This document shows, piece after piece, positions 14,019 to 64,000 of a stretch of DNA of 64,000 nt (the first letter of the stretch is position 1; every line of letters starts with the position of its first letter). The notes beneath the pieces are model-generated. The model had not been told where the DNA came from. It ran no database searches and worked only from the letters and a program-made list of their open reading frames with translations. The translations under genes were made by a program, and so were the position numbers. The stretch covers positions 186,001 through 250,000 of IMG/VR virus record IMGVR_UViG_3300024262_006558; one strand, 5' to 3'.

Positions 14019-14453
14019 TTAATAAGGGACTGGTGATGTATATGTAACTTTCACAATGGAGTTTGAATTTATACTCCAATAAGAAGCATAATAATAATCT
14101 CCCGTGACTAGCATCCAATTAGGGCCTATAACTATACCGTCTATTGTAATAGTGTAAGAAGGGATGTAAGTACCCATCTTTACCCATTGATTGTTTATTT
14201 TATTATAACTTTGATTGTAAAAATATACGTAATAGTAGTATACATAAATATACTTACCATTATAAAACATTTCATATGTATTTACAGATCTATCTACCTG
14301 ATAAGCTGTTTGCCCATACGAGTAAGAGTTAACCCAATTCTTTGAACCCTGAACTTTAGAAATATAGCGTACAGTGGATACTTGAGCATGGCCCAAGAAT
14401 CCTATAAAAAATAACGCTATAAATAATATAAGTTTAGAGATCGTAGATTTCAT
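14019..14453 (-). CDS. Secreted Tyr-rich hypothetical protein
   Basis: Signal peptide MKSTISKLILFIALFFIGFLGHA|Q. Confidence 0.6.
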   Translation of the reverse strand: MKSTISKLILFIALFFIGFLGHAQVSTVRYISKVQGSKNWVNSYSYGQTAYQVDRSVNTYEMFYNGKYIYVYYYYVYFYNQSYNKINNQWVKMGTYIPSYTITIDGIVIGPNWMLVTGDYYYASYWSINSNSIVKVTYTSPVPY

Positions 14454-21667: not shown

Positions 21668-23162
21668 AGATTGTGCAGTTCCATCCGCTTCAGCACCTAT
21701 GGTAGCTGATGCATATGAATACACTATGGCGGAAGCCAATATTGTAAACCAAATAACAGGAATCAAGTCTATATTCAACGCAGCCTTAAGAGGTATGCCA
21801 ACTAATAAGGTAGTTGGAGAGTTTGAGCATAAAGGTATTAAATACCCTGAGTTGCAAAAAAGGAGCTTCATGATTAATTGCGGACTTGAACAAGTACTAG
21901 CTCTTGTGACAAACACAACCCCAGAGGGGATGGTAGTCATAAAGAATTATTTCAAAGACATTCTAGGGAACAAAAATCAAGAATTTCTAGATTGGATTGA
22001 GCAATTTTCATTCAAAGGCGATTTATATGCCATGGATGAAGGGATTCCATTTTTCTCTCATGAGCCACTAGTTAAAGTGGTTGATGATTTTGAGAGCGGT
22101 CAATTATTCGAAAGCGTAATACTATCGGTCCTTAATAGGGAAATAAATGTAGCAACTACCGCACATGACGTTTATAATGCATGCAAGGATAAGGTGTTGC
22201 TGGAAGGAGCTTCTCGTAGAGCAATGTCTCAACAGGATGCGATAATGCTGTCAAGAGCAGCTTTAATAGGCGGATTCACAGCAACTTCAAATGTGGGATA
22301 TGGAATTCAAAACGATACAAAAGTAGGGGGTACTCACGGCCATTCTTACGTATTGCTTTATGGAAGCGAATACGAAGCTTTTACAGCGCAAGCAAAACTG
22401 CATGGCGATAACACCACTTTCCTTTTAGATACTTATGGAAACGTCAAGAGAGCCATGTTTATAGCGCTTATAGTAGCGGAAGAGCAAGGTTTAAACCATT
22501 GGAAGTACAGATTAGATAGCGGAGACCTACTAAAGCAAGCTATATGGATCCATAGCGCTATGAAAAAGTGCAATTTCAAAAGGAATCAATACGACATTGT
22601 AGCTAGTGATGATCTTAATGCGGGTAAAATCGCAGCAATAGAAGCTGGCGGAGGGGATATTGCATCATATCTAATGGGCACATTTCTAAGTATTCAATCG
22701 AAAGGTCCAGGTATTGTATTCAAGCTTACAGCAAGGGAAGGTGAAGAAGGTAGATGGATTCCTACAGCTAAGTATTCAGAGAACCCAGCAAAATCAACTA
22801 TTGGAGGAGATCTTCAAATTTACAGAATAGAAGGGTCTGATGGGTTCTATGTGAAAGACATAATCGCATTAGCTGATGAAGAAATAGGAGGGTTGATTAA
22901 AGAGGGGGAAAAGGCTAAAGGGTTATTGAAGCAAAGGATTCAAGGGGGTAAGTTAATATATCCAATACCTACTATATCTGAAATACAGCAAATAAGAGAT
23001 GAGGAGTTAGCTAAATTCAAAGATATTGAAAACTACCCTGTTTTTAGAAGCAATAAAGTTAAAGATACTCAGGATGAAATAAAGCGAGAGATTGACTCTC
23101 AAAATTCTAAAGTAATTATTCCTGAAAAATTCAGAAAAATATTTGAAGAAGAGTGTAAATAA
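21645..23162 (+). CDS. pncB: Nicotinate phosphoribosyltransferase
   Basis: ADAYEYTM (PncB-type DxYxxTM), EGASRR, ATSNV, GTHGHS, LLDTY, RLDSGDL. Confidence 0.85.
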   Translation: MSKNLKPKDCAVPSASAPMVADAYEYTMAEANIVNQITGIKSIFNAALRGMPTNKVVGEFEHKGIKYPELQKRSFMINCGLEQVLALVTNTTPEGMVVIKNYFKDILGNKNQEFLDWIEQFSFKGDLYAMDEGIPFFSHEPLVKVVDDFESGQLFESVILSVLNREINVATTAHDVYNACKDKVLLEGASRRAMSQQDAIMLSRAALIGGFTATSNVGYGIQNDTKVGGTHGHSYVLLYGSEYEAFTAQAKLHGDNTTFLLDTYGNVKRAMFIALIVAEEQGLNHWKYRLDSGDLLKQAIWIHSAMKKCNFKRNQYDIVASDDLNAGKIAAIEAGGGDIASYLMGTFLSIQSKGPGIVFKLTAREGEEGRWIPTAKYSENPAKSTIGGDLQIYRIEGSDGFYVKDIIALADEEIGGLIKEGEKAKGLLKQRIQGGKLIYPIPTISEIQQIRDEELAKFKDIENYPVFRSNKVKDTQDEIKREIDSQNSKVIIPEKFRKIFEEECK

Positions 23163-23173
23163 ACATTATTATT

Positions 23174-23776
23174 ATGGATAAATTAAATATAAAAAAAGAA
23201 GAAACGGTTTTTGACAATTACTTTCAAATAGTTCAAGCTGATATTGAAGTAGGGAAAGGCGATGGCGCTAGGATTATTAAGCGTTTAAAACTTGACAGGC
23301 CTGACGCTGTATCTGTGTTAATTTTTAATTCTGACACAAATGAGTTTGTTTTGGTAAAACAAAATAGGTATCCTATTGTAGCTAAAAATGGAAACGATCC
23401 AATCTATGAAACACCAGCGGGTATTGTAGATCCAGGTGAAGAGCCAATAGAGGCTGCTATTAGAGAAACTAGGGAAGAGGTTGGGTATGAAGTTAAAGCT
23501 GACAATATGGATCTTTTCCGTGAATACTATTCTGGGGTAGGTTATTCTTCTGAAAGAATTTTTCTTTATTTCACAACTGTCACCAACAAAGATAGAGTGG
23601 AAGAAGGCGGGGGTCTAGAAGATGAAGGGGAATTCCTTGAAGTTATACATGTTTCAAAAGATGAAGTGTTTAGAATGTTAGACACAAATGAGATAGTCGA
23701 TGGTAAAACAATCATTTCTCTTTTCTTTATAAGAACGGCTCTTATGGATGCTGAAATCGAAAATCTAAACGGATAA
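23174..23776 (+). CDS. Nudix hydrolase, ADP-ribose pyrophosphatase family
   Basis: Nudix box AGIVDPGEEPIEAAIRETREEVG; GGGLEDEGE; IVDGKT. Confidence 0.9.
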   Translation: MDKLNIKKEETVFDNYFQIVQADIEVGKGDGARIIKRLKLDRPDAVSVLIFNSDTNEFVLVKQNRYPIVAKNGNDPIYETPAGIVDPGEEPIEAAIRETREEVGYEVKADNMDLFREYYSGVGYSSERIFLYFTTVTNKDRVEEGGGLEDEGEFLEVIHVSKDEVFRMLDTNEIVDGKTIISLFFIRTALMDAEIENLNG

Positions 23777-23780
23777 TAAA

Positions 23781-23984
23781 ATGTCAAACATAACGTTATT
23801 TAGCATGAGTATGGGGGCTTTATGGTCCGCATACTCATGGCTTGTTATTGGCGACTCGTTAGTTTGGGGATGGAAAATTCCAATAGGAATAGTTGTGTGC
23901 GTGATTTCTCAAGCGTTAATTGAGATTTCTTTAAACGGTTTAGGTATTTTAATCCAAATGTTATGGAAAAAAATAAGAAAATAG
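23781..23984 (+). CDS. Small membrane protein
   Basis: Two hydrophobic segments. Confidence 0.55.
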   Translation: MSNITLFSMSMGALWSAYSWLVIGDSLVWGWKIPIGIVVCVISQALIEISLNGLGILIQMLWKKIRK

Positions 23985-24604
23985 GATTATATTTTGGATC
24001 ATTTAACCCAATAACTAATGCTCACATAATGGTATCTTTACAAGCTATAGAGTATAAAAATAAATTCGAATTAGATGAAGTTTGGTTTGTGGTTTCTCCG
24101 CAAAACCCTCACAAGGACCCAATCGATCTCGCCCCTGTAGAAGATAGAGTGAAAATGATAAGGGGTGCAATAGAGGATATAGGTGGCTGGAGTGATGAAA
24201 ATCATCGTTTAAAATGCTGCACTAAAGAGCTTGAGCTTCCCTCACCATCTTACACCCACATTACATTCGAAGAACTTGAAAAAGAGAATCAAGATTGTGA
24301 ATTCGTTATTGTTTGTGGAGCTGATACTTACGACAATATTCCTAAATGGAAATATGGAGAAAGCATTTGGAAAAAATATAACTTTCTTATCGTTGAGAGG
24401 GGTGACAGTGGAAAGGGAGGGTTTTACCGAAAGTCTGGAGATGATTTTATTCCTGGTCATTTTAGCGTTTCAGCATCCCTAGTGAGAGAGCGTTTGAAAA
24501 ACGGATTGAATATAACTCCTCTGGTTTCAGAAACAGTAAAAAAGCACATATTAAATAATAAGCTTTACGTAAGTTCAGCATCAACAAGCAATGAACTTAA
24601 TTAA
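23963..24604 (+). CDS. nadD: Nicotinate-nucleotide adenylyltransferase
   Basis: IGLYFGSFNPITNAH, VWFVVSPQNPHK, PSYT, GADT..KWK, VSASLVRERL. Confidence 0.9.
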   Translation: MEKNKKIGLYFGSFNPITNAHIMVSLQAIEYKNKFELDEVWFVVSPQNPHKDPIDLAPVEDRVKMIRGAIEDIGGWSDENHRLKCCTKELELPSPSYTHITFEELEKENQDCEFVIVCGADTYDNIPKWKYGESIWKKYNFLIVERGDSGKGGFYRKSGDDFIPGHFSVSASLVRERLKNGLNITPLVSETVKKHILNNKLYVSSASTSNELN

Positions 24605-24926
24605 GCCTCATATATTATTTGTAATATCAGCATTCCTATTTAGCACACTGTTCATAGTTGTCTCAGTAACAACTATGACAGCTAATAGTAATATTAAAAC
24701 CTATCACAAAGACAATAAACAATTATTATCACTCTACATAGATGAATATAGTGATAGCTTATATTGCGCAGTAACTGTTGAGCAGATACAGGTTCATATA
24801 ATGTTTCTTAATAGAGTTTATGAAGAAGTTGATGTTGAAAATGCAACAATTGAGTACTTTCTCTCGTTATACGTTATAAGGTACGGATCAACCATATATG
24901 AAGAAGAGCATCAAATAAAAAATTAG
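24591..24926 (+). CDS. Membrane-anchored hypothetical protein
   Basis: N-terminal TM segment. Confidence 0.5.
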   Translation: MNLIKPHILFVISAFLFSTLFIVVSVTTMTANSNIKTYHKDNKQLLSLYIDEYSDSLYCAVTVEQIQVHIMFLNRVYEEVDVENATIEYFLSLYVIRYGSTIYEEEHQIKN

Positions 24927-24932
24927 AATAGC

Positions 24933-26747
24933 ATGAAATTAAAAACAGCAATTAGTCAGATTAAGCCAGTTACTGGAGATATTGATGGGAATACCCATCA
25001 AATAATCACGGACATTAGAAAAGCTATTAATGAAGGCGTTGATATTATCGTTTTTCCAGAATTAGCAATTACTGGATATTGTTGCGGAGCTCTTTTTGCA
25101 CAAAAACACTTCATTCAATATAATCTTGATTTCCTTTACAAAAAAATATTGCCAGAGGTGACTGGCGACCTTATTTGCGTAATAGGTCACGCGTCTTTCC
25201 ACAAAATAGATGAAGATAACCCTTTCGACAAAGGTGTTGAAAATCAAGACTTTGCATTATACAATTCATGTTCAGTCATTCAGAGCGGGGAGATATTGAA
25301 AAAATACAATAAAGTGTTTCTAGCAAATGATGGACATCATGAGGATAGAAAATATTTCACCCCAGGCATTCATAGCGATAATCTAGATGAAAACCCAATA
25401 GGGCTTTCCATTAAAGTCAAAGGTCAATACATACGTCTTAACACGCTTATTTGTGAAGACATATGGCAAAATCCTGAAGTGTATGATTATGCATTTGACT
25501 CAGTACACACGCAAGGTTTCCCATCAGTAACTATCGCATTAAATCATTCTTATTTCTATTATGGAAAAACAAAAGAAAGATTAAAGATTTGTGAAAAGAT
25601 AGCTAATACATTTGGGCATTCGGTTATCTATTGTAATCCAGTGGGGGTCGGAGACATTGTCAAAAACATCATGATATATGATGGAAACAGTTTTGCTATA
25701 GATGGGTTTGGTCAACTAGTATATCAGGCCCCAGCTTTTAAAGAGGAGTTAGGTATATTTAATCTTGACATCAAAAATGCTAATGAAACAATTAAAGAAA
25801 ATCACCCCAGCAAATACGAAGAAATATTTGACGCCCTAGTATTTACTCAAAAAGAATTCTTTAGAGTTTGCGGATTGAAAAGAGCTCAAGTTCACATAAG
25901 TGGCGGCTTAGATTCAGCGGTTGCTGCAGTTATTAGCGTAAAAGCTATGGGGGCTGAAAATTGCTTTTTCATCTCTAATCCAACATCCTTCAATGGCGAG
26001 GAAACTAGGAGGGCAGCTCAAAGTATATCTCAATTCTTAAGAGTTAAGTTGTGGTGGAATCCAACTGGTGAAATAGTTAATCTTATTGAAAGAGTTCATG
26101 AGAAATCTTTCAATGATAAACCTAATCAAACTGGATTAGCATCTATACACGCTGTCTCTAGAACTGTTCAAGGTTTAGCTGCGTCACACTTCTTCTCTAG
26201 CGGTATAGTAGCTGCAGGCAATCATACAGAGATAGTTTTAGGATGGGCTAGTTTCCATGATATAGGTAGCATTGGGGTCATGTCTATAATAGGAGACCTT
26301 ACTAAAGTTGAAGTGTTCGAGTTAGCTAAATATATTAATGAAAGACTTGAATTAGAAGTGATACCTTCAGAACTGTATGATGGAAGAATGAAGCCTGCGG
26401 CTGAATTGCCAGATGCAAATGAAGACCCGTTTGATTACTTTGTGGTAAGCGGTATATGCGCAGAGATTATAAGAAATAAAAAAGGTATTAAAGAATTAAC
26501 CGAAGCATTCAATACTAAAACTTTAACTGAAGAGTTTTTCCCGCTAGACTGGGATAATAAGACCGTTTATGAAAAGCTAACGTTAGAACAATTTAAGAAG
26601 CAGTTAGAGGGATGTTTTCACCTCGCTAGAGTGAGTGTTTACAAAGCCGCTCAAAGTGCTCCAGTTCCATTGATATCTAGATTTAGTAGAGGGTTCTCAA
26701 GTAGAGAGACCCTTATTAATCACTACAAAGGAGATTATAAATTATAA
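24933..26747 (+). CDS. nadE: Glutamine-dependent NAD+ synthetase
   Basis: Nitrilase triad motifs FPELAITGY, YNKVFL, ICED; synthetase motifs SGGLDS, GDLTK, PAAEL. Confidence 0.9.
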   Translation: MKLKTAISQIKPVTGDIDGNTHQIITDIRKAINEGVDIIVFPELAITGYCCGALFAQKHFIQYNLDFLYKKILPEVTGDLICVIGHASFHKIDEDNPFDKGVENQDFALYNSCSVIQSGEILKKYNKVFLANDGHHEDRKYFTPGIHSDNLDENPIGLSIKVKGQYIRLNTLICEDIWQNPEVYDYAFDSVHTQGFPSVTIALNHSYFYYGKTKERLKICEKIANTFGHSVIYCNPVGVGDIVKNIMIYDGNSFAIDGFGQLVYQAPAFKEELGIFNLDIKNANETIKENHPSKYEEIFDALVFTQKEFFRVCGLKRAQVHISGGLDSAVAAVISVKAMGAENCFFISNPTSFNGEETRRAAQSISQFLRVKLWWNPTGEIVNLIERVHEKSFNDKPNQTGLASIHAVSRTVQGLAASHFFSSGIVAAGNHTEIVLGWASFHDIGSIGVMSIIGDLTKVEVFELAKYINERLELEVIPSELYDGRMKPAAELPDANEDPFDYFVVSGICAEIIRNKKGIKELTEAFNTKTLTEEFFPLDWDNKTVYEKLTLEQFKKQLEGCFHLARVSVYKAAQSAPVPLISRFSRGFSSRETLINHYKGDYKL

Positions 26748-29580: not shown

Positions 29581-30444
29581 ATGAAACAACTTAAGATACA
29601 GCACAAAATCTCTAATAGAGACTCAGAGTCAATTAACAAATATTTTACAGAGGTGTCTCAGATTCCAATGATTACAATAGAGGAAGAAAGAATCTTATCC
29701 GAAAAAATACAACAAGGAGATCAATTAGCAAAAAATAAATTGGTTAGCGCTAATCTTCGTTTTGTTATATCTGTCGCTAAACAATATCAAACTGGTAACG
29801 TATCTTTATCTGATGTAATTAATGAGGGCAATCTAGGGTTAATGGTGGCCGCAGAACGATTTGATCACACTAGAGGCTTCAAGTTTATTTCATACGCAGT
29901 ATGGTGGATTAGGCAAAGTATAATTGCATCAATCGACAAAAACAGCAGAGTTGTTAGGCTGCCAGGAAATCGCTCATCACTTCTTAATAAGATAAATCAA
30001 TTTGTAGACCTTAGAGTAAAGGAAACTGGAGAAATTCCAGGTCCAGACGAAATATGTCAACATGTTGAAATAGAGCATAGCACATATATTTTAATCATAG
30101 AAACTTCACTTCCTCACGCGTCTTTAGATAAACAATTGACGGAAGGAGAGTCTTCCACATTAGCTGATGTGATTGAATCTGATCTTTTTGAAGCTCCCGA
30201 CAACGATATAATCTGCGAAGGTAGAGACAAAAGAATAAATAATATGCTTTCTCAACTAAGCGTTCGTGATGCTGAAATAATCACATTAGCATTTGGAATT
30301 GGAGAAACTCAACCATGGACTCTTGAGGCTATTTCTGAAAAGCTAGGCTTATCTAGAGAGCGAGTTAGACAAATAAAAGAGAAGGCAATATCTCGATTAG
30401 GACGAACTCAAGGGTTGAGAAAGAATTATGCTGAATATTTATAA
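29581..30444 (+). CDS. RNA polymerase sigma70 factor (RpoD/RpoS family, Bacteroidota type lacking region 1.1)
   Basis: MKQLKI..NRDSESINKY, ANLRFVISVAKQY, NEGNLGL, GFKFISYAVWWIRQSI, LSRERVRQIKEKA. Confidence 0.92.
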   Translation: MKQLKIQHKISNRDSESINKYFTEVSQIPMITIEEERILSEKIQQGDQLAKNKLVSANLRFVISVAKQYQTGNVSLSDVINEGNLGLMVAAERFDHTRGFKFISYAVWWIRQSIIASIDKNSRVVRLPGNRSSLLNKINQFVDLRVKETGEIPGPDEICQHVEIEHSTYILIIETSLPHASLDKQLTEGESSTLADVIESDLFEAPDNDIICEGRDKRINNMLSQLSVRDAEIITLAFGIGETQPWTLEAISEKLGLSRERVRQIKEKAISRLGRTQGLRKNYAEYL

Positions 30445-47519: not shown

Positions 47520-48419
47520 ATGAAAACGGCTGATATTTACCAAAAAGTTACAGATAGAATTTTAGACCTAATAGATAATGGCGGTAAATTGCCATGGGAA
47601 AAGCCATGGGACTATAATGGTCAGCTACCTTGTAACTATGCAAGTAAGAAGCCTTACAGAGGTATTAATTTAATTATGACTGCATTCGATGAATTTAATA
47701 GTCCTTTTTACTTAACTGCAAATGAGATCAAAAAGCGTAAAGGCTCTTGGAGCGGTAAGGGTACTTTAATAGTATTTTGGAAGTTCTTAAAATTCAAAGA
47801 CAAAGATGATGAAAACAAGTTAAAGACTGTACCAATGTTAAAACATTACTATGTTTGGAATGAAGAACAAATAACGGGTATAGAGTTCAAGCATAACGAT
47901 AAGCATGAAATAAAAGATTTCGGCACAATCAATGAAGTAGAAGACATTTTTGCAAATATGCCTAATAAGCCTTCTATCATTCATGAAGAACAAGACAGAG
48001 CTTGTTATTCTCCAATTGCTGATACTGTAATGATGCCTTTAAAAGGTCAGTTCAAATGTTTAGAGTCTTATTACAAAACATTTGCGCATGAATTAATTCA
48101 TTCTACTGGTCATGAAGACAGATTAAATAGAGATGGTGTTGCAAACTTTGACAAATTCGGTTCACATCAATATTCTAAAGAAGAACTAGTTGCTGAAATG
48201 GGTGCATCTTTTATTATGGGTATGGCTGGATTAGAGTCAACTCAAGAAAATTCAGCATCTTATATTAAAAGCTGGAGAAACAAAATAGCTGGAGATAATA
48301 AGTTAATTATTCAAGCTGCTGGACAGGCTCAAAAAGCGGTGGACTATGTTTTGGGAACTTACAAGGATTACGCTGAAATTGAGAAGGAAAACGATAATTC
48401 AAAAGCAATGGCGGTTTAA
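47520..48419 (+). CDS. ardC: ArdC-like antirestriction ssDNA-binding protein with zincin domain
   Basis: IYQKVTDRI..PWEKPW..YRGIN; AHELIHSTGH..RLNR; YSKEELVAEMGA; NSASYIKSW; AAGQAQKAVDY. Confidence 0.85.
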   Translation: MKTADIYQKVTDRILDLIDNGGKLPWEKPWDYNGQLPCNYASKKPYRGINLIMTAFDEFNSPFYLTANEIKKRKGSWSGKGTLIVFWKFLKFKDKDDENKLKTVPMLKHYYVWNEEQITGIEFKHNDKHEIKDFGTINEVEDIFANMPNKPSIIHEEQDRACYSPIADTVMMPLKGQFKCLESYYKTFAHELIHSTGHEDRLNRDGVANFDKFGSHQYSKEELVAEMGASFIMGMAGLESTQENSASYIKSWRNKIAGDNKLIIQAAGQAQKAVDYVLGTYKDYAEIEKENDNSKAMAV

Positions 48420-55599: not shown

Positions 55600-55710
55600 T
55601 GGCATACAACGGCTTGGATATGCACCGTAAAGCGTAGCACAATGTTTAATCTTAACACTTCACTATCACGCTTAATGGTGTATAGGTTGTGTTAGCAAAT
55701 CGTTTTAATT

Positions 55711-55956
55711 ATGGAATTTAGGGAAGAAACAATACAAGAATTTAACTCATACAGAGATACAACATTAACAGAAGATATGACTTTTGCAGACGCAGTTGAA
55801 AATATTGAAAATGCAAATAATAGTTATTTTTATATTTCACTTAGTCAAAATGATGTTATTGAAGCTATTAATGATGAAAAAGAAATAGCAGAGCAGTTTG
55901 ATTTAGATTTAGTTTACTTGTTACCTCAAGGAATAGCTATTGCATTACAGGTGTAA
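55711..55956 (+). CDS. Cassette-borne acidic hypothetical protein
   Basis: Between GTTAGCAAA and TTTGCTAAC. Confidence 0.6.
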   Translation: MEFREETIQEFNSYRDTTLTEDMTFADAVENIENANNSYFYISLSQNDVIEAINDEKEIAEQFDLDLVYLLPQGIAIALQV

Positions 55957-56047
55957 TGTTTGCTAACGTTTAGTGTATGGTGTCGTTTGAGGCACGAAAA
56001 TGCACTATACATATTGTTGTGTGTAGTGCGGAATTTAAAAACTAAAC

Positions 56048-56236
56048 TTGATTAAAATGAAATACAAAAGTAAAACCACAAATAATATTGTAACCGTTAT
56101 TGAAAAAATAGGTGCTGGAATGTGTAGTAAAACATTAGGTATGACTTTAGTTATATTTAAGTTTGAAGACGATTTAGACTTTCATAGAGTAATGGAACAT
56201 AGAGAGTTCTATGCTAAATACGAAGAGGTAGAGTAG
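56048..56236 (+). CDS. Cassette-borne hypothetical protein
   Basis: Between GTTGTGTGTAGTGC and GCATTACACACAAC. Confidence 0.55.
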   Translation: MIKMKYKSKTTNNIVTVIEKIGAGMCSKTLGMTLVIFKFEDDLDFHRVMEHREFYAKYEEVE

Positions 56237-56336
56237 CATTACACACAACGTTTTGGCTATGTGCTGAACGTAGAGCAACGGAGTTTTGCATATAGGTAGT
56301 GTTATATGCTTTTATTAACAATTAAAATTAAACAAG

Positions 56337-56915
56337 ATGAAAATATTATTTCAAAGAGAAAGTGAAAACCTTAACTGTATTGTTTCTTGTAAAGACAATT
56401 CAAGAATAGAGACACCAAATGAGAGTAAGAGTTTATTGAATGAGAATGATTTATATGAAATTGCAAAATGGGGATTAGAAGGTGAATATTCATCGAGTGG
56501 GTGTTGGGATGATACTGATAATCTTGAAGATGCTATAAAATGTGCTGTTGAAGATTTTAAACTGTTTTTATCAAAACCATATCCGATTGAATTGGGTAAC
56601 ATACCAAATAATCCAATAATATATAGATTAGTTAGATTAAAAAACATAAATGACCTAAGAAAAAACGAATTAGGTAATAGTTGGTTTTCAAATCCAAACC
56701 AAATCCACGAAGAAGGGTTTTTTCAGATGTTAGATTATTTAAAACCGTTTAAAAATAAAGATGGTCAAGTTTATATAATCAAAGGACAGATAAATAAAGA
56801 CAATATTGATATGAAAAGAACTTTATGGGAACGAAGCACACAGTGGTGGGAAAACGAAATAGTGGTAATTGATGATTCCAACATAAAAATAATTTCAATC
56901 GAAGCACTATCTTAG
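56337..56915 (+). CDS. Cassette-borne hypothetical protein
   Basis: 192 aa between attC-like sites with non-matching ends. Confidence 0.6.
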   Translation: MKILFQRESENLNCIVSCKDNSRIETPNESKSLLNENDLYEIAKWGLEGEYSSSGCWDDTDNLEDAIKCAVEDFKLFLSKPYPIELGNIPNNPIIYRLVRLKNINDLRKNELGNSWFSNPNQIHEEGFFQMLDYLKPFKNKDGQVYIIKGQINKDNIDMKRTLWERSTQWWENEIVVIDDSNIKIISIEALS

Positions 56916-57061
56916 TATTGGTGCTAACGTTTAGTATAAGATTAGTTGCGATTAATAGCACTCACCTACGCAAACTACAACAGTTGATTAAAAGTAAAAT
57001 GATTAAATAACCAAACAACGTAGCAATTAATTTTATACGTTGTTATAAATCTGTAAAAATT

Positions 57062-57244
57062 ATGGAATGGATAGTAGTACCAAAGATTGGATTTAAACAT
57101 AAAATTGGTAACATGATATGTGGATTATTAAAAGTGATTGATGGATTGATTATGGTAATTTCATTCGGAAATTTAGCAACCAATTTTTGTTTAAATTTTA
57201 CAATAGTTAGAAAAAGGCACAACTTTATGTTAGACAATAAATAA
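57062..57244 (+). CDS. Cassette-borne hypothetical protein
   Basis: Between GTTATAAA and TTTATAAC. Confidence 0.55.
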   Translation: MEWIVVPKIGFKHKIGNMICGLLKVIDGLIMVISFGNLATNFCLNFTIVRKRHNFMLDNK

Positions 57245-57441
57245 TTTTTATTGTTTATAACACGAAAATAAAGATAAGCGTTAAGCGACCCGAAGGGTTA
57301 TCTTTTATTTTCTGTTATGATCTGATAGTCCAAGTACATAGTCTCCCCATCACCGTATATATTGGTGATGGGGAAACAGAAAAATGGTAATGGGTTATAC
57401 ATTGTGTTATAGCCTTTTAATTAACAATTAAATAAACAAAA

Positions 57442-57639
57442 ATGAAAGATTTAGATTTAACAAAAGACCAACACTTAATGAGTATTAGAGTTGATGGGGA
57501 ATGTATAGGACACGTTGAAATAGAGGATGGTAAAATAATTACAAATGGCACAGTAGGAGAAAACACTTACGAGAATTTTGTAGACTTAATATACGGACTA
57601 CAAGGGTTTGGGATAAGTGTAGATGACTTCTTCTTTTAA
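57442..57639 (+). CDS. Cassette-borne hypothetical protein
   Basis: Between GTTATAGCC and GGCTATAAC. Confidence 0.6.
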   Translation: MKDLDLTKDQHLMSIRVDGECIGHVEIEDGKIITNGTVGENTYENFVDLIYGLQGFGISVDDFFF

Positions 57640-57764
57640 TTGGCTATAACGGTTAGTATATGAGCCTGTACTTGTATGGCTTATATACATTGTTGTATGC
57701 TGGTGCGGTTTTGAAGCACTAATTTTCAAATAATAACTAAAGTAATAATTAAATATTTTGAGCG

Positions 57765-58130
57765 ATGGAAAAACAAAAAAATCAAACAAGTGCAATAAAT
57801 GCACAAGTTGGTGTAAAAAATGCACATACTGAACTAATCGGAAATTCCGAACAGTTGAACTTTACAAAAGGCGAATGGAAAGCCGAAAGAAAATCAGAAA
57901 ACCAAACTTGCCACTTAGTAAAAACAGGCGCTAAATACACTATTCACGTGTACGACTCTAAATATGGGATAGAAGAGTCTGAAAGTTGGCAAAATGCTAA
58001 ATTAATAGCAAAAGCACCTAATTTGCTGGAAATGCTAAAAAAAGTAACTGATGAATTAGAATTTTACGCAGGGAATGAAATTATAAAACACCCACTTATA
58101 AATGAATCAAGAAATTTAATGAAATTATGA
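57765..58130 (+). CDS. Cassette-borne hypothetical phage protein
   Basis: FTKGEW...NAKLIAKAPNLLEML; between GTTGTATGC and GCATACAAC. Confidence 0.6.
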   Translation: MEKQKNQTSAINAQVGVKNAHTELIGNSEQLNFTKGEWKAERKSENQTCHLVKTGAKYTIHVYDSKYGIEESESWQNAKLIAKAPNLLEMLKKVTDELEFYAGNEIIKHPLINESRNLMKL

Positions 58131-58805
58131 AAAACTTTATAACAAAAGCAAATGAGTTGAAAGTTAGTTATTCAACACTATACAAACTAATTTTAGGAAA
58201 AGAAATTGAGTGTATATTAGTTTGTGGTAGGTATTATTTTAATTAAGAGCGAGGGCAAAAATATTTAATTATGGTATTAGAAGCACTAAACTTGAATATT
58301 AGCACTAATGTAGCACTTGCATACAACACGAAAATAAAGATAAGCGTTAAGCGACCCGAAGGGTTATCTTTTATTTTCTGTTATGATCTGATAGTCCAAG
58401 TACATAGTCTCCCCATCACCGTATATATTGGTGATGGGGAAACAGAAAAATGGTAAAGCGTTATATGGATTGTATCTATATAACTAACGTGGGGAAATAA
58501 ATAGACGACTGATTTGAGTACTTGAAAAAGTTTAAAAGATTCCTAAGATGTTGGAATATCATAAAAAACTCTGTTAACTGTTGGGCAGTCGAGCCAATTG
58601 CGTCTATAACGTAGTATTGTTGAATACAATCTGTCCCAATTACCTAGGAAGTCTGATTAATTTCAGGCTTTCTTTTTTTATATTTGTTTCTCTGACTTTT
58701 TCCGCAACTGCGTAAACCGATCGATTATATTCCCTGGAGGAACCAATCAACAAAGTACATAATATCCCCATCACCGTATATATTGGTGAATCTAAACTTA
58801 AAGAC

Positions 58806-59228
58806 ATGAAAGACTTATTTGAACATTACGAAGAAATGCCTAGCCACCTTACCGCTATTTGCGATAAGTGGACAGAGAAGCATTTGGATGAAGGTTTAAG
58901 TTACATTGACTGTGCAGACTTCCTAAAAGAATTGGAAGCGATTGGATATACTTTCGAGTATGGTTTGGATGCAGAGCCGTATGGATTAGTTGAAATTTCT
59001 AAAAAGAAAGTATTTGTTTACTTGGCAAAACTTGGAGTTGTGGTAAGTACAGATGAAAATGGAGAAACGGAGGTTCAAAGAATTGACAGTCCCGAAGAGT
59101 TTAGAGATGACAACGAATTGTTTTTGGATTTCACTCCTCCATTATTGGAGAGCGACCAAGAAGCAAAAGACATTTATAATAGCATCACGCATTCAATGTG
59201 GATTCATTTAACTGGAGACAAAACGTAA
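58806..59228 (+). CDS. Hypothetical protein
   Basis: Behind repeat A. Confidence 0.6.
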   Translation: MKDLFEHYEEMPSHLTAICDKWTEKHLDEGLSYIDCADFLKELEAIGYTFEYGLDAEPYGLVEISKKKVFVYLAKLGVVVSTDENGETEVQRIDSPEEFRDDNELFLDFTPPLLESDQEAKDIYNSITHSMWIHLTGDKT

Positions 59229-59283
59229 AAGTACATAATATCCCCGCCACCGTATATATTGGTGAATCTAAACAAAGGAAATT

Positions 59284-59781
59284 ATGAAAACTATAAAAGT
59301 AAGACACTACAACGGAACGGAATTACAAGTTAGTCTTGGAGATGTTATAATAGGCGAAGGTACTATGGGAACATCAAAAGGTAGAGATGTAACTGGGGTA
59401 GTTCACAAAATAGAAGTAGGTAACATCACGTTGAAAAGAGGTAACACTTTACACTTGGTAGACCACACGACTTTAAAAGTTGCTCAAATGAGAGAAAACA
59501 ACTTTGAAGTGTATACTAAGAATCCGAAAACGGGTGAAGAAGGTTGGGAAATTGAAATGGTATCGGTAATAGCATATAGTACATATCACGCTAGGCAGAT
59601 ATTGAAGAAGTGGAATTTGTTTGACGAAGTTATCTTGTTTAATTTCTCTGCTCCACTCGCAGAATCTAACGAAGCAGGATTGTACACTTTAAATGAAACG
59701 ATGAAAGCAGTAGAAGGTACAATTCTTGAAACGGATTACCACAACAAATATTATAAACCATTAGCACACATTAAAGCATAA
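59284..59781 (+). CDS. Hypothetical protein
   Basis: Behind repeat A. Confidence 0.6.
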   Translation: MKTIKVRHYNGTELQVSLGDVIIGEGTMGTSKGRDVTGVVHKIEVGNITLKRGNTLHLVDHTTLKVAQMRENNFEVYTKNPKTGEEGWEIEMVSVIAYSTYHARQILKKWNLFDEVILFNFSAPLAESNEAGLYTLNETMKAVEGTILETDYHNKYYKPLAHIKA

Positions 59782-59955
59782 GTGTTTGATTCAGAAATTT
59801 AGAGGGCGAGAGTCCTCTATTTTTCGTTATTGATTTCTCTGAGTTTTTCCGCAGCTGCGTAAACCATACGATCGGAATCCCTGGAGGATCCGATCATGCA
59901 ACAAAGTACATAGTTTCCCCGTTAGTGTATATATTACTGAATCAAAAGAATTATA

Positions 59956-60762
59956 ATGAATATCCCAAAAGAACAATTAAAGCGAATAGTGGACTTACTT
60001 AATAGCGATGTCTTTGCGGTAACGTTTAGACTGGAAACGGGTAATAAGTTAGAAACGGCAGAACAAGCCGTTGACGCGCTCTTTGATGGGGTAGTCACTT
60101 TAGAGGATATGTTCTTTTGTAGATTGGACGAGTCATTTAGACACGCAACCCAAGAGGTAAATGATACATGGGAGGATAATATGGAAATGTTTGCTCCAGA
60201 AAACTATCTTCCAAGTGAAAAAACATTACCCGAAGGTGGAGCGTGGATAAAGGTTAGGCATGAAACTGGATACCAATTACATTTTGCAAAGGTTTCAAAT
60301 AGAAAAAGAAGATTTGCCGAAGAGATAAAGAAAGTTTCTCAAACTCTCAATAAAGAGATGGAAAAAGTAAGAGAGTTCAATTGTTCTATGGACAAAGCTG
60401 AAGCTCTCCACAAAAAGATGGACATTCTTTTTGTTTATCATGAGATTGATATTCCTTTATATGAAGTTAGATATCAGAGAACTAAAACAAAAGTCGAATA
60501 TTTAAACCCATTTCAATATGAGATTTGCAGCGATGAAGATTTGCAAATGATATTGGATGCGGTTAGAAAGAAAACCTTTGGCGTTAAGATGAGAAATCTT
60601 TACACGTCAGTAAACAAGGACCAAATCTTTTATTTGAGAAGCAGAGGTATAAGCGAGCAAGAAGCGATGATTATGGCTAACTTGAAACAATGTTACTTTG
60701 ATGTTGATATTATGGGCATGAACGAGGTTTTTAATGAGTCATTCAGACTTGTAAAAGCATAA
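59956..60762 (+). CDS. Hypothetical protein with SufB/SufD C-terminal-like motif
   Basis: VNKDQIFYLRSRGISEQEAM. Confidence 0.6.
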   Translation: MNIPKEQLKRIVDLLNSDVFAVTFRLETGNKLETAEQAVDALFDGVVTLEDMFFCRLDESFRHATQEVNDTWEDNMEMFAPENYLPSEKTLPEGGAWIKVRHETGYQLHFAKVSNRKRRFAEEIKKVSQTLNKEMEKVREFNCSMDKAEALHKKMDILFVYHEIDIPLYEVRYQRTKTKVEYLNPFQYEICSDEDLQMILDAVRKKTFGVKMRNLYTSVNKDQIFYLRSRGISEQEAMIMANLKQCYFDVDIMGMNEVFNESFRLVKA

Positions 60763-60826
60763 CTCTCCCCATAGTACATAATATCCCCCGTACCGTATAT
60801 ATTGGTGAATCTAAACAAACAAAGTC

Positions 60827-61156
60827 ATGAATATTATAGTTTTCACATTAAACACTAAAGCGAAATCAGAGTACAGAAATGGAAATGGTGAAATTGATCG
60901 CAATGAATATCCAGTTCATATCAAATTAGATACTGATTATTCACATGGTTTTATTTTGAAAATTGAAGACACTCCAGGCTCTTGGCATATGTCTACTCTT
61001 ATGGGTGATCGTTATGGTAATGCATACAATGAAGACAATCAAGTTTTAAGTATTCATGGTACGGAGTGGATGTGCGTTAACATATTTGATTTAATCAAGG
61101 AAGCGAATGAAACGCTAGAAAAAATGGATATGAAAGTAATTCCCGACAATAGATAA
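60827..61156 (+). CDS. Hypothetical protein
   Basis: Behind repeat A. Confidence 0.6.
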   Translation: MNIIVFTLNTKAKSEYRNGNGEIDRNEYPVHIKLDTDYSHGFILKIEDTPGSWHMSTLMGDRYGNAYNEDNQVLSIHGTEWMCVNIFDLIKEANETLEKMDMKVIPDNR

Positions 61157-61214
61157 CGGAAGTACATAATATCCCCACCACCGTATATATTGGTGAATCT
61201 AAACAAAACTCATT

Positions 61215-61730
61215 ATGGCAACAGATTATAAAAAATTAGCACTAGAAGCATTAAGTTTCATTAGAGATAACACCGACAACGAAGCTTTTCAAAGCACCGT
61301 TGATGGAACGGAGATTGACATAGATAAAACTATCCAAGAACTTACTCCTATCTTGCCAGATGTTGACTTTACATTATCTCAAATAGTCGAAGGCAAAAGA
61401 CAACTTAATCTAGCATCTCAAATTGTTAAACAAAACATGAAACTTCTTATCATGCACTACATGAAAGAGGCGGGCTTAGAAGAAATAATCATTGAAGATT
61501 TAGATGTTATCCACAGTGATGCAGGAATTTCAGCTGGAGATTATATGGATTCGGTTACTAGAGTCCTAGCAAATGGAGATTACTTCTATACTCACAATGG
61601 CGAAAGAAGCGAAGAAACGGAAGCAGGCGGAATTGAAAGCTTGCCAGTAAATTCTTTAGACAAATTATTAAAAAGATTACAGGATTATAATGGTAGTAAT
61701 TTAGCATTAAGCACAACGCTTACTGTATGA
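61215..61730 (+). CDS. Hypothetical protein
   Basis: Behind repeat A; followed by an attC-like site. Confidence 0.6.
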   Translation: MATDYKKLALEALSFIRDNTDNEAFQSTVDGTEIDIDKTIQELTPILPDVDFTLSQIVEGKRQLNLASQIVKQNMKLLIMHYMKEAGLEEIIIEDLDVIHSDAGISAGDYMDSVTRVLANGDYFYTHNGERSEETEAGGIESLPVNSLDKLLKRLQDYNGSNLALSTTLTV

Positions 61731-61853
61731 TTAGAATTTGAAACTAAATCTTAGTTGTTGCTAACGTACCGTATAAGAAGCGTTGAGAGGTACGAACAAT
61801 GATTTTTATACATTGTTATATGCTTTTATTAATAACAATTAAAATTAAACAAG

Positions 61854-62102
61854 ATGAAAAAAGTAACCCATTGCATAGTATATAGATTACACAAAGACAA
61901 TTCACCAACTGTAATAGATTGTTCTTCGGAAAAGGAACAAGGTGAACAGTTATCTAAAATAATAAAAGAGGGGTATAAAAATGCGTATAAAGCAACACCT
62001 GAACAAGCTACGAAAGTCTTGAATGATTACGGAAAACAATTTGAACCTAAGCCATTAACACAACAGGAAAGATGGGATAATTGGGCTATAGGTAAAGGGT
62101 AA
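61854..62102 (+). CDS. Cassette-borne hypothetical protein
   Basis: Between GTTATATGC and GCATATAAC. Confidence 0.6.
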   Translation: MKKVTHCIVYRLHKDNSPTVIDCSSEKEQGEQLSKIIKEGYKNAYKATPEQATKVLNDYGKQFEPKPLTQQERWDNWAIGKG

Positions 62103-62196
62103 TTGCATATAACGAATTGTATATGAGGCGTGAGGAACGAATGACTGCATATACGCTGTTATATGCTTTTTTATTAACTAATTAAAACAGATTAAA

Positions 62197-62520
62197 ATGA
62201 TTATAGGATTAATACAAGGAAATAGAGTTGAATTAGGAGAAACTGATAACGGATATGTATACAAAAACAGTTTTGCGTTTGACAAAAAGACTGATGAAAT
62301 ATGTTATATACCAGAGTTAGGGATTGAGGGAGATATAATTACAGAAGACACTTCTGTTTATAGATATTCCGACTTTTTAGAAATAGCTACTGATTATGTA
62401 AAAAGAAATGGGTTAAGTAATACACCTCAAGATATGGCTGAACAATTATTTGAATGTGTTGATTGGCAACATCCAAGTACATTACTTGATGAATGGGAAA
62501 TTCATTTAGAAGATGAGTAA
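62197..62520 (+). CDS. Cassette-borne hypothetical phage protein
   Basis: ICYIPE..LFECVDWQHPSTL; between GTTATATGC and GCATATAAC. Confidence 0.6.
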   Translation: MIIGLIQGNRVELGETDNGYVYKNSFAFDKKTDEICYIPELGIEGDIITEDTSVYRYSDFLEIATDYVKRNGLSNTPQDMAEQLFECVDWQHPSTLLDEWEIHLEDE

Positions 62521-62604
62521 TTGCATATAACGGTTAGTATATGAAATGTGGAGCAAAGCGGAATTTTTTATATACCGTGTTATGCTCTTTTAAATTAGAT
62601 AATT

Positions 62605-62760
62605 ATGATAAGTTTTAAATATTACAAGAATTACGGAATTGAATACTGCTTTGGTAGTGCAACTGTACAGGGATTTATGGGTAGACCTCTTAAAACTTTT
62701 ACAGGTGGATGTATAAAGGCAGTAGAAAAAGCAGAAAAGTATATAGATAGCCTTAATTGA
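62605..62760 (+). CDS. Cassette-borne 51-aa protein (not in ORF track)
   Basis: MISFKYYKNYGIEYCFG...YIDSLN*; between GTTATGCTC and GAGCATAAC. Confidence 0.55.
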   Translation: MISFKYYKNYGIEYCFGSATVQGFMGRPLKTFTGGCIKAVEKAEKYIDSLN

Positions 62761-62858
62761 GCATAACGGTTAGCGTATAGTGACGTGAAACGAAGTGAAA
62801 TGCACTTATACGCCTTGTTGTGGTGAGTACGGGTTATTAACCAATAAATTAAATTGAA

Positions 62859-63080
62859 ATGATACAAGACAAATTAGAAAATCAAATCCATAACGTAATT
62901 ATGGAAACGGCAAGAGAACCTAAACTTATTGTAATGCACCCACAAACATGGGTTGACCTTGCAAAAGAAGTTACTGGCAAAGATGGGATGACAATAAATA
63001 GATACGACCCAAATATGAAGTACAGAGGGATTAAGGTGATTAGAAGTTTGGATTTGTTGGAGGGTGAGTTTGAAATGTAG
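62859..63080 (+). CDS. Cassette-borne hypothetical protein
   Basis: Between GTTGTGGTGAGTAC and GTATTCACCACAAC. Confidence 0.6.
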   Translation: MIQDKLENQIHNVIMETAREPKLIVMHPQTWVDLAKEVTGKDGMTINRYDPNMKYRGIKVIRSLDLLEGEFEM

Positions 63081-63205
63081 TATTCACCACAACACGAAAA
63101 TAAAGATAAGCGTTAAGCGACCCGATAGGGTTATCTTTTATTTTCTGTTATCGGTACATAATATCCCCCGTACCGTATATATTGGTGAACTTAAATAAAA
63201 ACATC

Positions 63206-63472: not shown

Positions 63473-64000
63473 ATATTCAAATACCGTAAAAATGTTAGGT
63501 GTAGATACTAGAAGCTCATTTCTTTTTGGGGATGCGTGCGACAATTTAATTAAGTGTAGCAGTAAAGAAATCCAACAAGAAGCAAAGGACGAAATTAGTC
63601 AGATACTAATCAAGCTAAAGCCCGTTGAAGGCGGTATAACTATTCAAATGGTTGACGCGCTTTTACATGGTATGATTACGGAACATGCACACAAAGATAC
63701 TTTGCCTTTAAAAGGGTTTAGTATAAAAGTACATAATTCCCCCGAAGCCGTATATATTGGTGAATCAAAAGAAAAGAATATGCACACTATAAGAAAAAGA
63801 ACGCCAGTATTTGAAACCGATGACTTTCAAGAAGTATTCAATACAGATTCTTACAATGTATTTGTGAAACCTGAATTTGAATCTAAATTCAAAAGCTCTT
63901 TATCTTATCCTGATATCGTACTAAGAAAGTATGACCACGAAAATGGAATGACTACAGTAGTGGCGGACTATCAAAACAAAATAGGAAGCAAGATGCTTGC
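63465..64000 (+). CDS. Partial ORF reading in frame through repeat A into the ORF starting at 63780
   Basis: No stop from ATG 63465 to the window end; in-frame ATG at 63780. Confidence 0.5.
   Translation, partial: MNKYSNTVKMLGVDTRSSFLFGDACDNLIKCSSKEIQQEAKDEISQILIKLKPVEGGITIQMVDALLHGMITEHAHKDTLPLKGFSIKVHNSPEAVYIGESKEKNMHTIRKRTPVFETDDFQEVFNTDSYNVFVKPEFESKFKSSLSYPDIVLRKYDHENGMTTVVADYQNKIGSKML

Follow-up and report, generated by a model that had tools for sequence, protein, structure and literature searches.

Organization of the cassette arrays

The window analysed here is a stretch of 64,000 nucleotides from a 494-kb phage genome (IMG/VR record IMGVR_UViG_3300024262_006558, positions 186,001 to 250,000). 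Between 55.6 and 63.2 kb it contains twelve imperfect hairpins that begin with AAC and end with GTT, together with one right half-site, and these separate single genes into two arrays. The twelve full sites, A to L, have the C of AAC at 55610, 55967, 56249, 56928, 57261, 57650, 58327, 61765, 62113, 62531, 62767 and 63093, and the G of GTT at 55691, 56016, 56301, 57042, 57314, 57692, 58380, 61815, 62158, 62579, 62817 and 63147, respectively. The half-site, E2, has its GTT at 57406. Three of the twelve sites (E, G and L) are copies of one near-perfect, terminator-like hairpin termed hp_T. The features are listed below with each cassette running from one AAC to the next under an AA|C model, for reasons given later; L numbers denote individual loci with which the window was compared.

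55602-55699 (+), site A: AAC 55608-55610, an 86-nt hairpin and GTT 55691-55693, with 6-nt tails on each side. A homologous hairpin plus right flank occurs in L026, L074 and L102.
55610-55966 (+), cassette 1: hairpin A, tail GTTAGCAAA, an 81-aa ORF (55711-55956) without a Pfam or PHROG match, and tail TTTGCTAA; the tails are complementary over 9 nt.
55967-56248 (+), cassette 2: hairpin B (AAC 55965, GTT 56016), a 59-aa ORF (56057-56236), and long tails that pair over 13 of 14 nt with one G.T.
56249-56927 (+), cassette 3: hairpin C (GTT 56301) and a 192-aa ORF (56337-56915). This is the only unit whose two tails do not match (ATATGC against GGTGCT, a 4-nt match). Hairpin C plus its leader is homologous to L026 6516-6599.
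56928-57260 (+), cassette 4: the 119-nt hairpin D (GTT 57042), a 60-aa ORF (57062-57244), and tails GTTATAAA and TTTATAAC.
57259-57390 (+), terminator-promoter module, copy 1: begins exactly at AAC with the near-perfect hairpin E (hp_T, GTT 57314; terminator-like hit at 57287), followed by a palindromic copy of promoter repeat A. It forms a 132-nt direct repeat with 58326-58457.
57390-57649 (+), right half-site E2 (GTT 57406) and cassette 5: a 65-aa ORF (57442-57639), and tails GTTATAGCC and GGCTATAAC.
57650-58326 (+), cassette 6: hairpin F (AAC 57648, GTT 57692), ORFs 57765-58130 (121 aa, phrog_1273) and 58127-58246, and tails GTTGTATGC and GCATACAAC.
58325-58457 (+), terminator-promoter module, copy 2 (hairpin G, hp_T, GTT 58380): the right end of array 1.
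61757-62112 (+), site H (AAC 61763, GTT 61815) and cassette 7: an 82-aa ORF (61854-62102).
62113-62530 (+), cassette 8: hairpin I (GTT 62158) and a 107-aa ORF (62197-62520). The hairpin plus leader is similar to L090.
62531-62766 (+), cassette 9: hairpin J (GTT 62579) and a 51-aa ORF (62605-62760). The hairpin plus leader is 91% identical to L043.
62767-63092 (+), cassette 10: hairpin K (GTT 62817), a 73-aa ORF (62859-63080), and long tails that pair over 13 of 14 nt with one G.T.
63091-63149 (+), hairpin L (hp_T, third copy): the right end of array 2, followed directly by promoter repeat A.

Complementarity and folding of the cassette ends

The bases that follow GTT at one site are the reverse complement of the bases that precede AAC at the next site over 8-10 contiguous nucleotides in 9 of 10 adjacent pairs, the exception being the pair C and D, with 4 nt. 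The two tails of a single site, in contrast, match over only 3-5 nt, except at site I, where both neighbouring cassettes use the same tail. When the left tails were shuffled among the right tails, 9 of 10 matches were reached in 1 of 200,000 permutations. The first-pass annotation had reported this pattern, and its observation is confirmed: every sequence it gave lies where it was said to lie, although its left coordinates mark the C of AAC rather than the start of the string. Folding was named in advance as a check on the cassette reading, and sites circularised in silico fold better than the linear hybrid sites in 8 of 10 cases, for example from -6.8 to -13.5 kcal/mol for F and from -12.0 to -21.6 kcal/mol for G. 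Searches with half-site profiles find such sites only at 55.6-63.2 kb, and not in the other 55 kb of the window or in 7.7 kb downstream. A search of Rfam gave no hit.

Distribution and structure of the site family

The same geometry holds in about 100 IMG/VR phage contigs and in more than 120 Bacteroidota chromosomal loci. After removal of duplicates, 34 of 77 phage and 29 of 52 bacterial neighbour pairs have perfect 6/6 tails, compared to 1.3% of random pairs and 3 of 106 own-site pairs, although many sites outside the window are left halves only. If the + strand is taken as the one that reads AAC, a 5-nt spacer, a GTATA stem, a variable loop, a TATAC stem, a 3-nt spacer and GTT, then two helices are supported by covariation (94.8% paired; score 0.385 against 0.137 in shuffles, with 0 of 500 shuffles reaching it), and a G.T pair is present on this strand in 26 of 27 sequences. 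The + strand is more stable by 1.6-1.9 kcal/mol in 198 of 213 sites, whichever way the genes point, while canonical attC sites show 2.12 kcal/mol for the recombined strand (PMC5027507).

Sites of this family are 44-128 nt long, so that some are shorter than canonical attC sites (about 57-141 nt). AAC and GTT are invariant in the alignments and the first base after AAC is always G, but the canonical core RYYYAAC / GTTRRRY is followed only in part. Only the base next to AAC is reliably a pyrimidine (T 88%, C 11%), and positions -2 to -4 fit Y/Y/R in about half of the sites, while many family members do read GCCTAAC / GTTAGGC. The L stem has no bulged G or T, in contrast to the extrahelical bases found in canonical sites on the arm opposite the AAC of the recombined strand (Nivina 2016). 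On the strand that carries the breakpoint and folds better, the extra spacer bases (5 nt against 3 nt) lie on the AAC arm, which is the reverse of canonical attC bottom strands, and only a 2-by-3 internal loop adds one base to the opposite arm.

Cassette boundaries

Comparisons between genomes place the breakpoint at the AAC side. In bacteria, identical cassettes shared between genomes begin exactly at AAC and end at the next AAC (L183/L193, L112/L220 and L115/L163). In phages, the conserved flank is the right one, with right-flank identity above 0.7 in 119 pairs and left-flank identity above 0.7 in 19. Cassette 6 of the window shows the same: both of its ends are homologous to L070 and L038, with homology starting at the AAC of F and ending at the next AAC, but the cargo differs, and L089 shows a compensatory tail change. 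For this cassette only the ends are shared, and no homologue of any window cassette protein was found in another context.

Further evidence comes from ten near-identical isolates of Polaribacter phage Freya, which differ only by whole units gained or lost at AAC|, 47 nt upstream of the start codon of their integrase gene. These isolates carry arrays of 0, 842, 1744, 2216, 4040 and 4942 nt, which form nested prefixes ending at AAC|, and one internal 902-nt unit is missing with AAC| on both sides.

Association with a Xer-like recombinase

The same hairpin family sits next to a Xer-like tyrosine recombinase in many Bacteroidota genomes and flavobacterial phages. In 22 phage loci, all 56 site hits lie upstream of, and on the same strand as, the gene for this recombinase. 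All nine bacterial loci with a site within 4 kb of this recombinase have it at the right end of the array; L339 is an intact example, and L225 a remnant. These recombinases lack the roughly 42-aa insertion specific to IntI, aligning to VchIntIA in two pieces that skip chain residues 206-247, and they score 71-206 bits on TIGR02249, below the NCBIfam integron-integrase cut-off of 265. In the 494-kb contig, no tyrosine recombinase was found in the window, and no recombinase lies in the 7.7 kb downstream.

A proposed integron-like system of Bacteroidota and their phages

The two clusters are likely to be arrays of mobile gene cassettes of an integron-like system specific to Bacteroidota and their phages, for which no earlier description was found. 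In this view, each site is a folded single-strand hairpin whose base is closed by AAC/GTT plus 6-11 cassette-specific bases, and a Xer-like tyrosine recombinase would exchange strands at or inside the AAC on the + strand. A cassette would therefore consist of its hairpin, GTT, tail, cargo, complementary tail and AA. In the excised circle the two tails would pair and complete the site, while in an array every site is a hybrid of two neighbours, which gives the pattern that the first-pass annotation reported. In complete platforms the recombinase gene sits at the right end of the array, and in Freya a non-hairpin primary site lies 47 nt upstream of it, where units are added or lost, or else they are excised internally. 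In bacteria the cargo is antisense to the + strand, so the hairpin follows its gene as in integrons, whereas in phages the cargo is on the + strand, so the hairpin precedes its gene. The geometry, the site family, the AAC breakpoints, the recombinase association and the strand bias rest directly on the sequence comparisons. The chemistry of the reaction, for which there is no biochemical evidence with this recombinase, the circular intermediate, and activity in this phage are inferred.

The interpretation in the first-pass annotation is supported only in part. Its proposal of integron-type cassette arrays, with end complementarity best explained by site-specific recombination at a folded AAC/GTT site, is supported, and its suggestion that the recombinase is non-canonical and lies outside the window also fits. 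Its placement of the crossover at G|TT, which would leave each hairpin at the 3′ end of its cassette, is not supported, since flank linkage and exact homology boundaries assign the hairpin in phages to the downstream gene. Nor is support available for its claim that promoterless genes are placed behind promoter repeat A, which remains a hypothesis; one array contains a terminator-promoter module inside it. Active shuffling by this particular phage is likewise not shown, as no close relative was found and the only relative found is distant and lacks the array. In addition, the tails of cassette 3 break the complementarity rule, and the E-E2 region is a composite that the simple model does not explain.

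Alternative explanations

Three other explanations are each considered unlikely. The sites could be ordinary attC sites captured from host integrons and recombined at G|TT by a host IntI with the IntI-specific domain, as they have AAC/GTT triplets, an unpaired spacer, an L stem and a variable loop of attC-like length, and HattCI called one family member, in Polaribacter phage P12002L, an attC (PMC9892861). Integrons are also reported at low prevalence in Bacteroidota. However, IntegronFinder surveys report almost none in Bacteroidetes. That family member (P12002L_attC1), the only one tested in print, was also the only one of six phage attCs that IntI1 did not recombine (PMC9892861), and this reading is further weakened by the absence of the IntI insertion from the array-end recombinases, the lack of extrahelical G or T in the stems, and breakpoints at the AAC side of the strand with the longer AAC arm.

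The hairpins could instead act in RNA, as terminators or processing sites whose complementary tails form long-range stems around each mRNA and are kept by selection for RNA structure, with no recombination involved. In phages the sites are on the sense strand directly after stop codons, the hp_T copies look like intrinsic terminators, compensatory tail changes occur in homologous cassette ends, and G.T pairs are tolerated. In bacterial arrays, however, the better-folding strand with the conserved G.T is antisense to the genes in 32 of 34 cassettes, yet geometry and strand bias are unchanged, and six to nine base pairs enclosing 200-1900 nt would make a weak RNA stem. Whole units are also present or absent with exact AAC boundaries in otherwise identical genomes, and the sites are tied by position to a recombinase gene. 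Alternatively, the repeats could serve only as microhomology for homologous or illegitimate recombination, resembling the promoter-stem-loop (PeSL) modules proposed for T4-type phages. The boundaries share 10-12 nt of similar sequence (TTGTTnnnAAC) that could support slippage or short-homology deletion, and the window has no recombinase. Such recombination does not explain why the two ends of a unit are reverse complements, the strand-specific folding bias, the constant position and orientation of arrays next to one recombinase family, or the nested Freya arrays at a single point.

Relationship to known systems

Integrons, including sedentary chromosomal integrons, share with this system folded single-strand sites closed by AAC/GTT with an unpaired spacer, an L stem and a variable loop, cassettes that carry their own complementary core tails, and one strand that folds better than the other. 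They also share a tyrosine recombinase gene and a non-hairpin primary site at one end of the array, which is seen here in the Freya series and not in the window. The cargo is small ORFans in phages, and in bacteria includes genes with acetyltransferase, NUDIX, metal-transport and DNA-methylase domains. Beyond the recombinase and stem differences described above, the complementary tails are much more variable than RYYYAAC. In bacteria the recombinase is usually co-oriented with the cargo genes, while in phages the cargo genes are inverted relative to the site and the recombinase lies downstream of the array.

Clusters of attC-type sites without a nearby integrase (CALINs) have been described in virulent phages by Qi, Rajabal, Ghaly, Tetu and Gillings in 2023 (PMC9892861), and P12002L_attC1 is one of their predicted sites. 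That study used generic attC predictors on GenBank phages, found at least two attC sites per CALIN and treated them as ordinary integron components usable by IntI1. It did not describe the family, its own recombinase, the AAC-side breakpoint, the polarity flip between phages and bacteria, or the Freya polymorphism.

In Xer/dif-dependent modules (pdif modules, IMEX elements), a Xer-family tyrosine recombinase also moves small gene modules bounded by short sites whose module-facing arms are inverted copies, but dif-type sites are 28-bp double-strand sites that alternate in orientation, whereas the present sites are hairpins on one strand with a strand-specific folding bias. In PeSL modules, small early-region ORFans of large phages are separated by conserved stem-loop and promoter elements proposed to mediate modular shuffling. 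PeSL exchange is thought to be homologous recombination between repeats, and PeSL modules are not known to have complementary cassette ends, an AAC/GTT core or a dedicated recombinase.

Judged by geometry, with 12 sites and no recombinase in the window, the megaphage arrays are CALIN-like stores that end in a terminator-promoter module. They would need an enzyme encoded elsewhere in the 494-kb genome, in a co-infecting phage or in the host.

Gene content of the window

The window covers bases 186,001-250,000 of a 494,080-bp metagenomic contig (JGI 3300024262, Ga0210003_1000004), and its gene content is that of a very large phage. It encodes thymidylate synthase, a dNMP-kinase-like protein, a sigma-70-type factor, NAD-salvage enzymes, an ArdC-like protein and a protein with an Acb1/2'-5' RNA-ligase-like domain. 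Four of these features are located as follows:

14434-16683 (-): a 749-aa protein combining nucleotidyltransferase, DUF5661 and Acb1/2'-5' RNA-ligase-like domains, with a possible anti-CBASS function
21645-26747 (+): a NAPRTase plus NAD synthase pair, with possible NAD+ reconstitution
29581-30444: the phage's own sigma-70-type factor
47520-48419 (+): an ArdC-like anti-restriction protein

From 55.6 to 63.2 kb, all genes are small, lie on the + strand, and have no Pfam or PHROG function apart from one match to phrog_1273, a family of unknown function. Rfam and tRNA scans of the window found nothing. A blastn search of the region against GenBank phages gave no relatives, although a 70-nt hairpin query did find Cellulophaga phage phi13:2.

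Hairpin sites and complementary cassette ends

Twelve complete AAC…GTT hairpins (sites A-L) and one right half-site (E2) were located in this region. Every sequence string cited in the first-pass annotation is present, and its central observation, that the bases after one GTT are complementary to those before the next AAC, was confirmed. Among ten adjacent site pairs, nine are reverse complements over 8-10 contiguous nt, and two of these extend to 13 of 14 nt with one G.T. The one failure is the pair of sites C and D. In contrast, the two tails of a single site share only the AAC/GTT triplet plus 0-2 nt, with the exception of site I, where both neighbouring cassettes use the same tail. When the partners were permuted, 9 of 10 matches were reached once in 200,000 trials.

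The folding of cassettes circularised in silico had been set as a test of this reading. Joining each cassette's own ends gives a 9-14-bp closing stem, an asymmetric internal loop, a GTATA/TATAC stem and a variable loop, and this lowers the folding energy in 8 of 10 cases. Half-site profiles find no further sites in the other 55 kb of the window or in 7.7 kb beyond it.

Three of the sites (E, G and L) are copies of one near-perfect, terminator-like hairpin that begins exactly at AAC. In two of them a copy of promoter repeat A follows within one 132-nt direct repeat, while in the third (L) a promoter-repeat copy follows directly. The stretch comprising E, the promoter repeat and E2 is composite. 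Promoter repeat A (GTACATAnTnTCCCC..ACCGTATATATTGGTGAATC) precedes most non-cassette genes of this region, and the two copies inside the arrays are palindromic versions (CCCCATCACC..GGTGATGGGG). Its copies lie at the following window positions:

57337-57375
58404-58442
58752-58800
59229-59275
59905-59945
60775-60815
61160-61205
63153-63195
63728-63770

A diverged form of the repeat precedes genes in L323, a fragment of a distantly related megaphage. A conserved non-coding block of about 110 nt, consisting of a terminator-like hairpin followed by TTCTCTGAnTTTTTCCGCAnCTGCGTAAACC…CCCTGGAGGA, lies just upstream of two promoter-repeat copies (window 58640-58750 and 59790-59900) and is conserved in this relative (L323 1385-1500). 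It could be a regulatory RNA or a protein-binding region, and Rfam has no match to it. In addition, the motif GAGCG[AT]nGG[CA]AAAA recurs shortly after many sites (window 57753-57768 and 58246-58262, and the fetched loci L026, L070, L257 and L261), sometimes overlapping the start codon, and could be a promoter, operator or leaderless-start signal carried by the cassettes.

A large family of sites in Bacteroidota and their phages

An exact-pattern scan of IMG/VR with the left-half consensus returned 100 stretches from many different contigs, most of which carry several more sites, many of them left halves only. A two-half pattern scan of one genome per prokaryotic species returned at least 120 loci, nearly all of them in Bacteroidota (Flavobacteriaceae, Saprospiraceae, Cytophagales and Chitinophagaceae). 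The complementary geometry holds throughout.

Tail complementarity across the site family (comparison; perfect 6/6 match; 5/6 match)
Phage neighbour pairs (77, deduplicated); 34; 19
Bacterial neighbour pairs (52, deduplicated); 29; 5
Random right-left pairs; 1.3%; 5.2%
A site's own two tails (106); 3; 2

The common 59-nt class of sites has a two-helix structure supported by covariation. In its alignment, 94.8% of cells are paired, and the covariation score is 0.385 against 0.137 in shuffles, with 0 of 500 shuffles reaching the observed value. Eight pairs show changes on both sides, and a G.T pair is present in 26 of 27 sequences.

Strand bias and cassette boundaries

The + strand of a site is here the one reading AAC, long spacer … short spacer, GTT. 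With DNA parameters, this strand folds more stably than its complement in 93 of 100 phage sites and 105 of 113 bacterial sites, by 1.6 and 1.9 kcal/mol, respectively, which is close to the 2.12 kcal/mol bias of the recombined strand of canonical attC sites (PMC5027507). Mismatch types in the tails (13 G.T-type against 7 A.C-type) were too few to name the folding strand, which was instead identified from fold energies and the conserved G.T pair. The bias is tied to the site and not to the genes, as cassette ORFs lie on the + strand in 50 of 55 phage cassettes but on the opposite strand in 32 of 34 bacterial cassettes. This argues for a DNA-level function and against an mRNA-level one.

Among pairs of similar hairpins in different contexts, the conserved flank is the right one. 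Right-flank identity exceeds 0.7 in 119 pairs, against 19 for the left flank, and the best cases have right identity of 0.9-1.0 and left identity of about 0.5. In phages part of this could reflect non-coding leaders, so the bacterial cases are decisive. Homology blocks between different bacterial genomes begin exactly at the AAC of a hairpin and run one cassette, to the next AAC:

loci L183 and L193: 754 nt, 93% identity
loci L112 and L220: 1.87 kb, 95% identity
loci L115 and L163

Within the window, the ends of cassette 6, which begins with hairpin F, recur in loci L070 and L038. Homology starts at the AAC of hairpin F and stops at the AAC before the next hairpin, which differs between the two, and the cargo inside also differs, so that conserved cassette ends surround different genes. 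In locus L089 the same cassette ends carry a compensatory change of the four tail bases, from GTAT/ATAC to ACCT/AGGT. However, tblastn of all 18 window proteins in and around the arrays against about 300 fetched loci gave no hit at E<1e-4, and mobility of the window's own cargo genes therefore could not be shown.

These data indicate that the mobile unit runs from AAC to AAC and that the hairpin belongs with what lies to its right. The interpretation given in the first-pass annotation is thus only partly supported: its assignment of the crossover between G and TT gives the same tail pattern but the wrong ownership of the hairpins. The arm asymmetry could also be read as meaning that the minus strand is the recombined one, as in canonical attC, but the linkage and boundary data contradict this reading, and it was rejected.

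An associated Xer-like recombinase

No tyrosine recombinase ORF is present in the window or in locus L001. In bacterial loci, a family of Xer-like tyrosine recombinases lies at the right end of the arrays, as defined by site orientation, and this holds in all nine loci where a site lies within 4 kb of the gene. In an intact example from Reichenbachiella, nitrate-reduction genes are followed by a 383-aa recombinase, then a cassette gene, then a site. In a decayed example from Algoriphagus marincola, a C-terminal recombinase remnant lies between bipA and an array whose genes carry sulfatase, NUDIX, acetyltransferase and AAA/HNH domains, among others.

A single-protein search of IMG/VR with the bacterial recombinase found only one fragment. 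A search with an alignment of the family was needed, and 80 loci from it were kept. Of these, 22 carry site hits, and all 56 hits are on the recombinase's strand and upstream of it, with none in the equally long downstream flanks. The iterated recombinase profile drifted to a Dcm methylase (L192) and CTnDOT-type integrases (L124, L136), and these were excluded from the family alignment. The tyrosine recombinase gp038 of phi13:2, which lies next to the few sites of that phage, is a generic integrase and not of the array-associated family.

The array-associated proteins align to VchIntIA in two pieces that skip its IntI-specific insertion (chain residues 206-247). They score below the NCBIfam cut-offs for both XerA/integron integrase and TIGR02249.

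Cassette turnover in cultured phages

The recombinase family occurs in Polaribacter phages Freya and Leef and in Cellulophaga phage Ingeline. The Freya isolates are 100% identical on one side of the array and 99.6% identical on the other, and they differ in the stretch between a conserved 402-nt gene and the integrase.

Arrays of Freya isolates (isolate; array length in nt; relation to the Freya_10 array)
Freya_1; 0; no array
Freya_2; 842; exact prefix, ending directly after AAC
Freya_5; 1744; exact prefix, ending directly after AAC
Freya_6; 2216; Freya_5 prefix plus a different unit after the same AAC
Freya_8; 4040; lacks one internal 902-nt unit, with the boundary directly after AAC on both sides
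Freya_10; 4942; reference

In each isolate checked (Freya_1, 2, 5 and 10), the last AAC is followed by the same non-hairpin sequence, 47 nt upstream of the integrase start codon. This is the pattern expected from insertion at an integrase-proximal primary site plus excision between array sites, and the paper describing these phages does not mention it. The Freya_10 array (L309/L312, array positions about 800-845) also contains an "empty" unit, in which a right half-site with tail GTTGTAAAC is followed about 60 nt later by the complementary GTTTACAAC, with no ORF between them.

Relation to described integron elements

Integrons are the textbook system for capturing genes by structure-specific recombination, and they are thought to be rare in Bacteroidota and marginal in phages. 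IntegronFinder 2.0 reports only In0 elements and one complete integron (Salinibacter) in Bacteroidetes. CALINs have been reported in 17 phage genomes (Qi et al. 2023), and the site named P12002L_attC1 in that study is one of at least ten sites of the present family found in Polaribacter phage P12002L, several of them flanking DNA methyltransferase genes. It was the only one of the six phage attCs in that study that IntI1 failed to recombine. Full-text searches found no description of this family, its recombinase or the polarity flip within the literature searched.

Interpretation of the window arrays

The two clusters in the window are cassette arrays of this family. They comprise ten units of one or two ORFs each, in phage polarity, with the hairpin and leader preceding the gene, and each array ends on the right in the terminator-type hairpin followed by promoter repeat A. 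That right end is where complete platforms carry the recombinase and primary site. Because no recombinase is nearby, the arrays are CALIN-like, and any present activity would depend on an enzyme elsewhere in the genome, in another phage or in the host. The complementary geometry, the site family, the boundaries at AAC, the strand bias and the association with the recombinase are established by the sequence comparisons. The chemistry (cleavage between AA and C, a circular intermediate and use of single-stranded DNA) is inferred by analogy with integrons, and activity in this phage is also only inferred.

Searches for relatives of this megaphage found only the same phage (L002, 99.94% identical, no indels) and the fragment L323, which has 47% amino-acid identity in the neighbouring methyltransferase-like gene. 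This fragment has the promoter-repeat genes but no hairpin array at the corresponding place, which is consistent with the arrays being accessory, but it is too distant to map breakpoints. It does carry a miniature site (L323 20-70), in which TTGCATATAAC is followed after 15 nt by GTTATGCGC, with almost no hairpin between AAC and GTT, and this may be a scar or a minimal junction.

A broader reading, considered slightly more likely than not, is that Bacteroidota and their phages, from 40-kb siphoviruses to this 494-kb megaphage, share an integron analogue for which no description was found. It would use a Xer-like recombinase without the IntI domain and hairpin sites cut at the AAC of the better-folding strand. 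Phages would use it in mirror-image polarity, with the hairpin and leader in front of each gene and the recombinase downstream of the array, to collect and exchange early-region ORFans and DNA methyltransferases. Phage and host cassette pools would then be interchangeable at the DNA level but antisense to each other's expression.

The finding suggests a parallel system, widespread in marine and soil Bacteroidota and in their phages and using a simpler recombinase, that standard integron detection may overlook. It also offers tractable material, as the Freya isolates already differ by whole cassettes, and the recombinase and its short sites could become a new structure-specific recombination tool. 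In two cultured flavobacterial phages, phi13:2 (L103 15553-16380) and P12002L (L308 29.2-31 kb and 38-39 kb), the cassettes bounded by these sites often carry DNA methyltransferases, which hints at a counter-restriction role for part of the cargo. The system gives a concrete mechanism for the hypervariable ORFan regions of phage genomes, which carry DNA methyltransferases in these two phages and plausibly other counter-defence genes.
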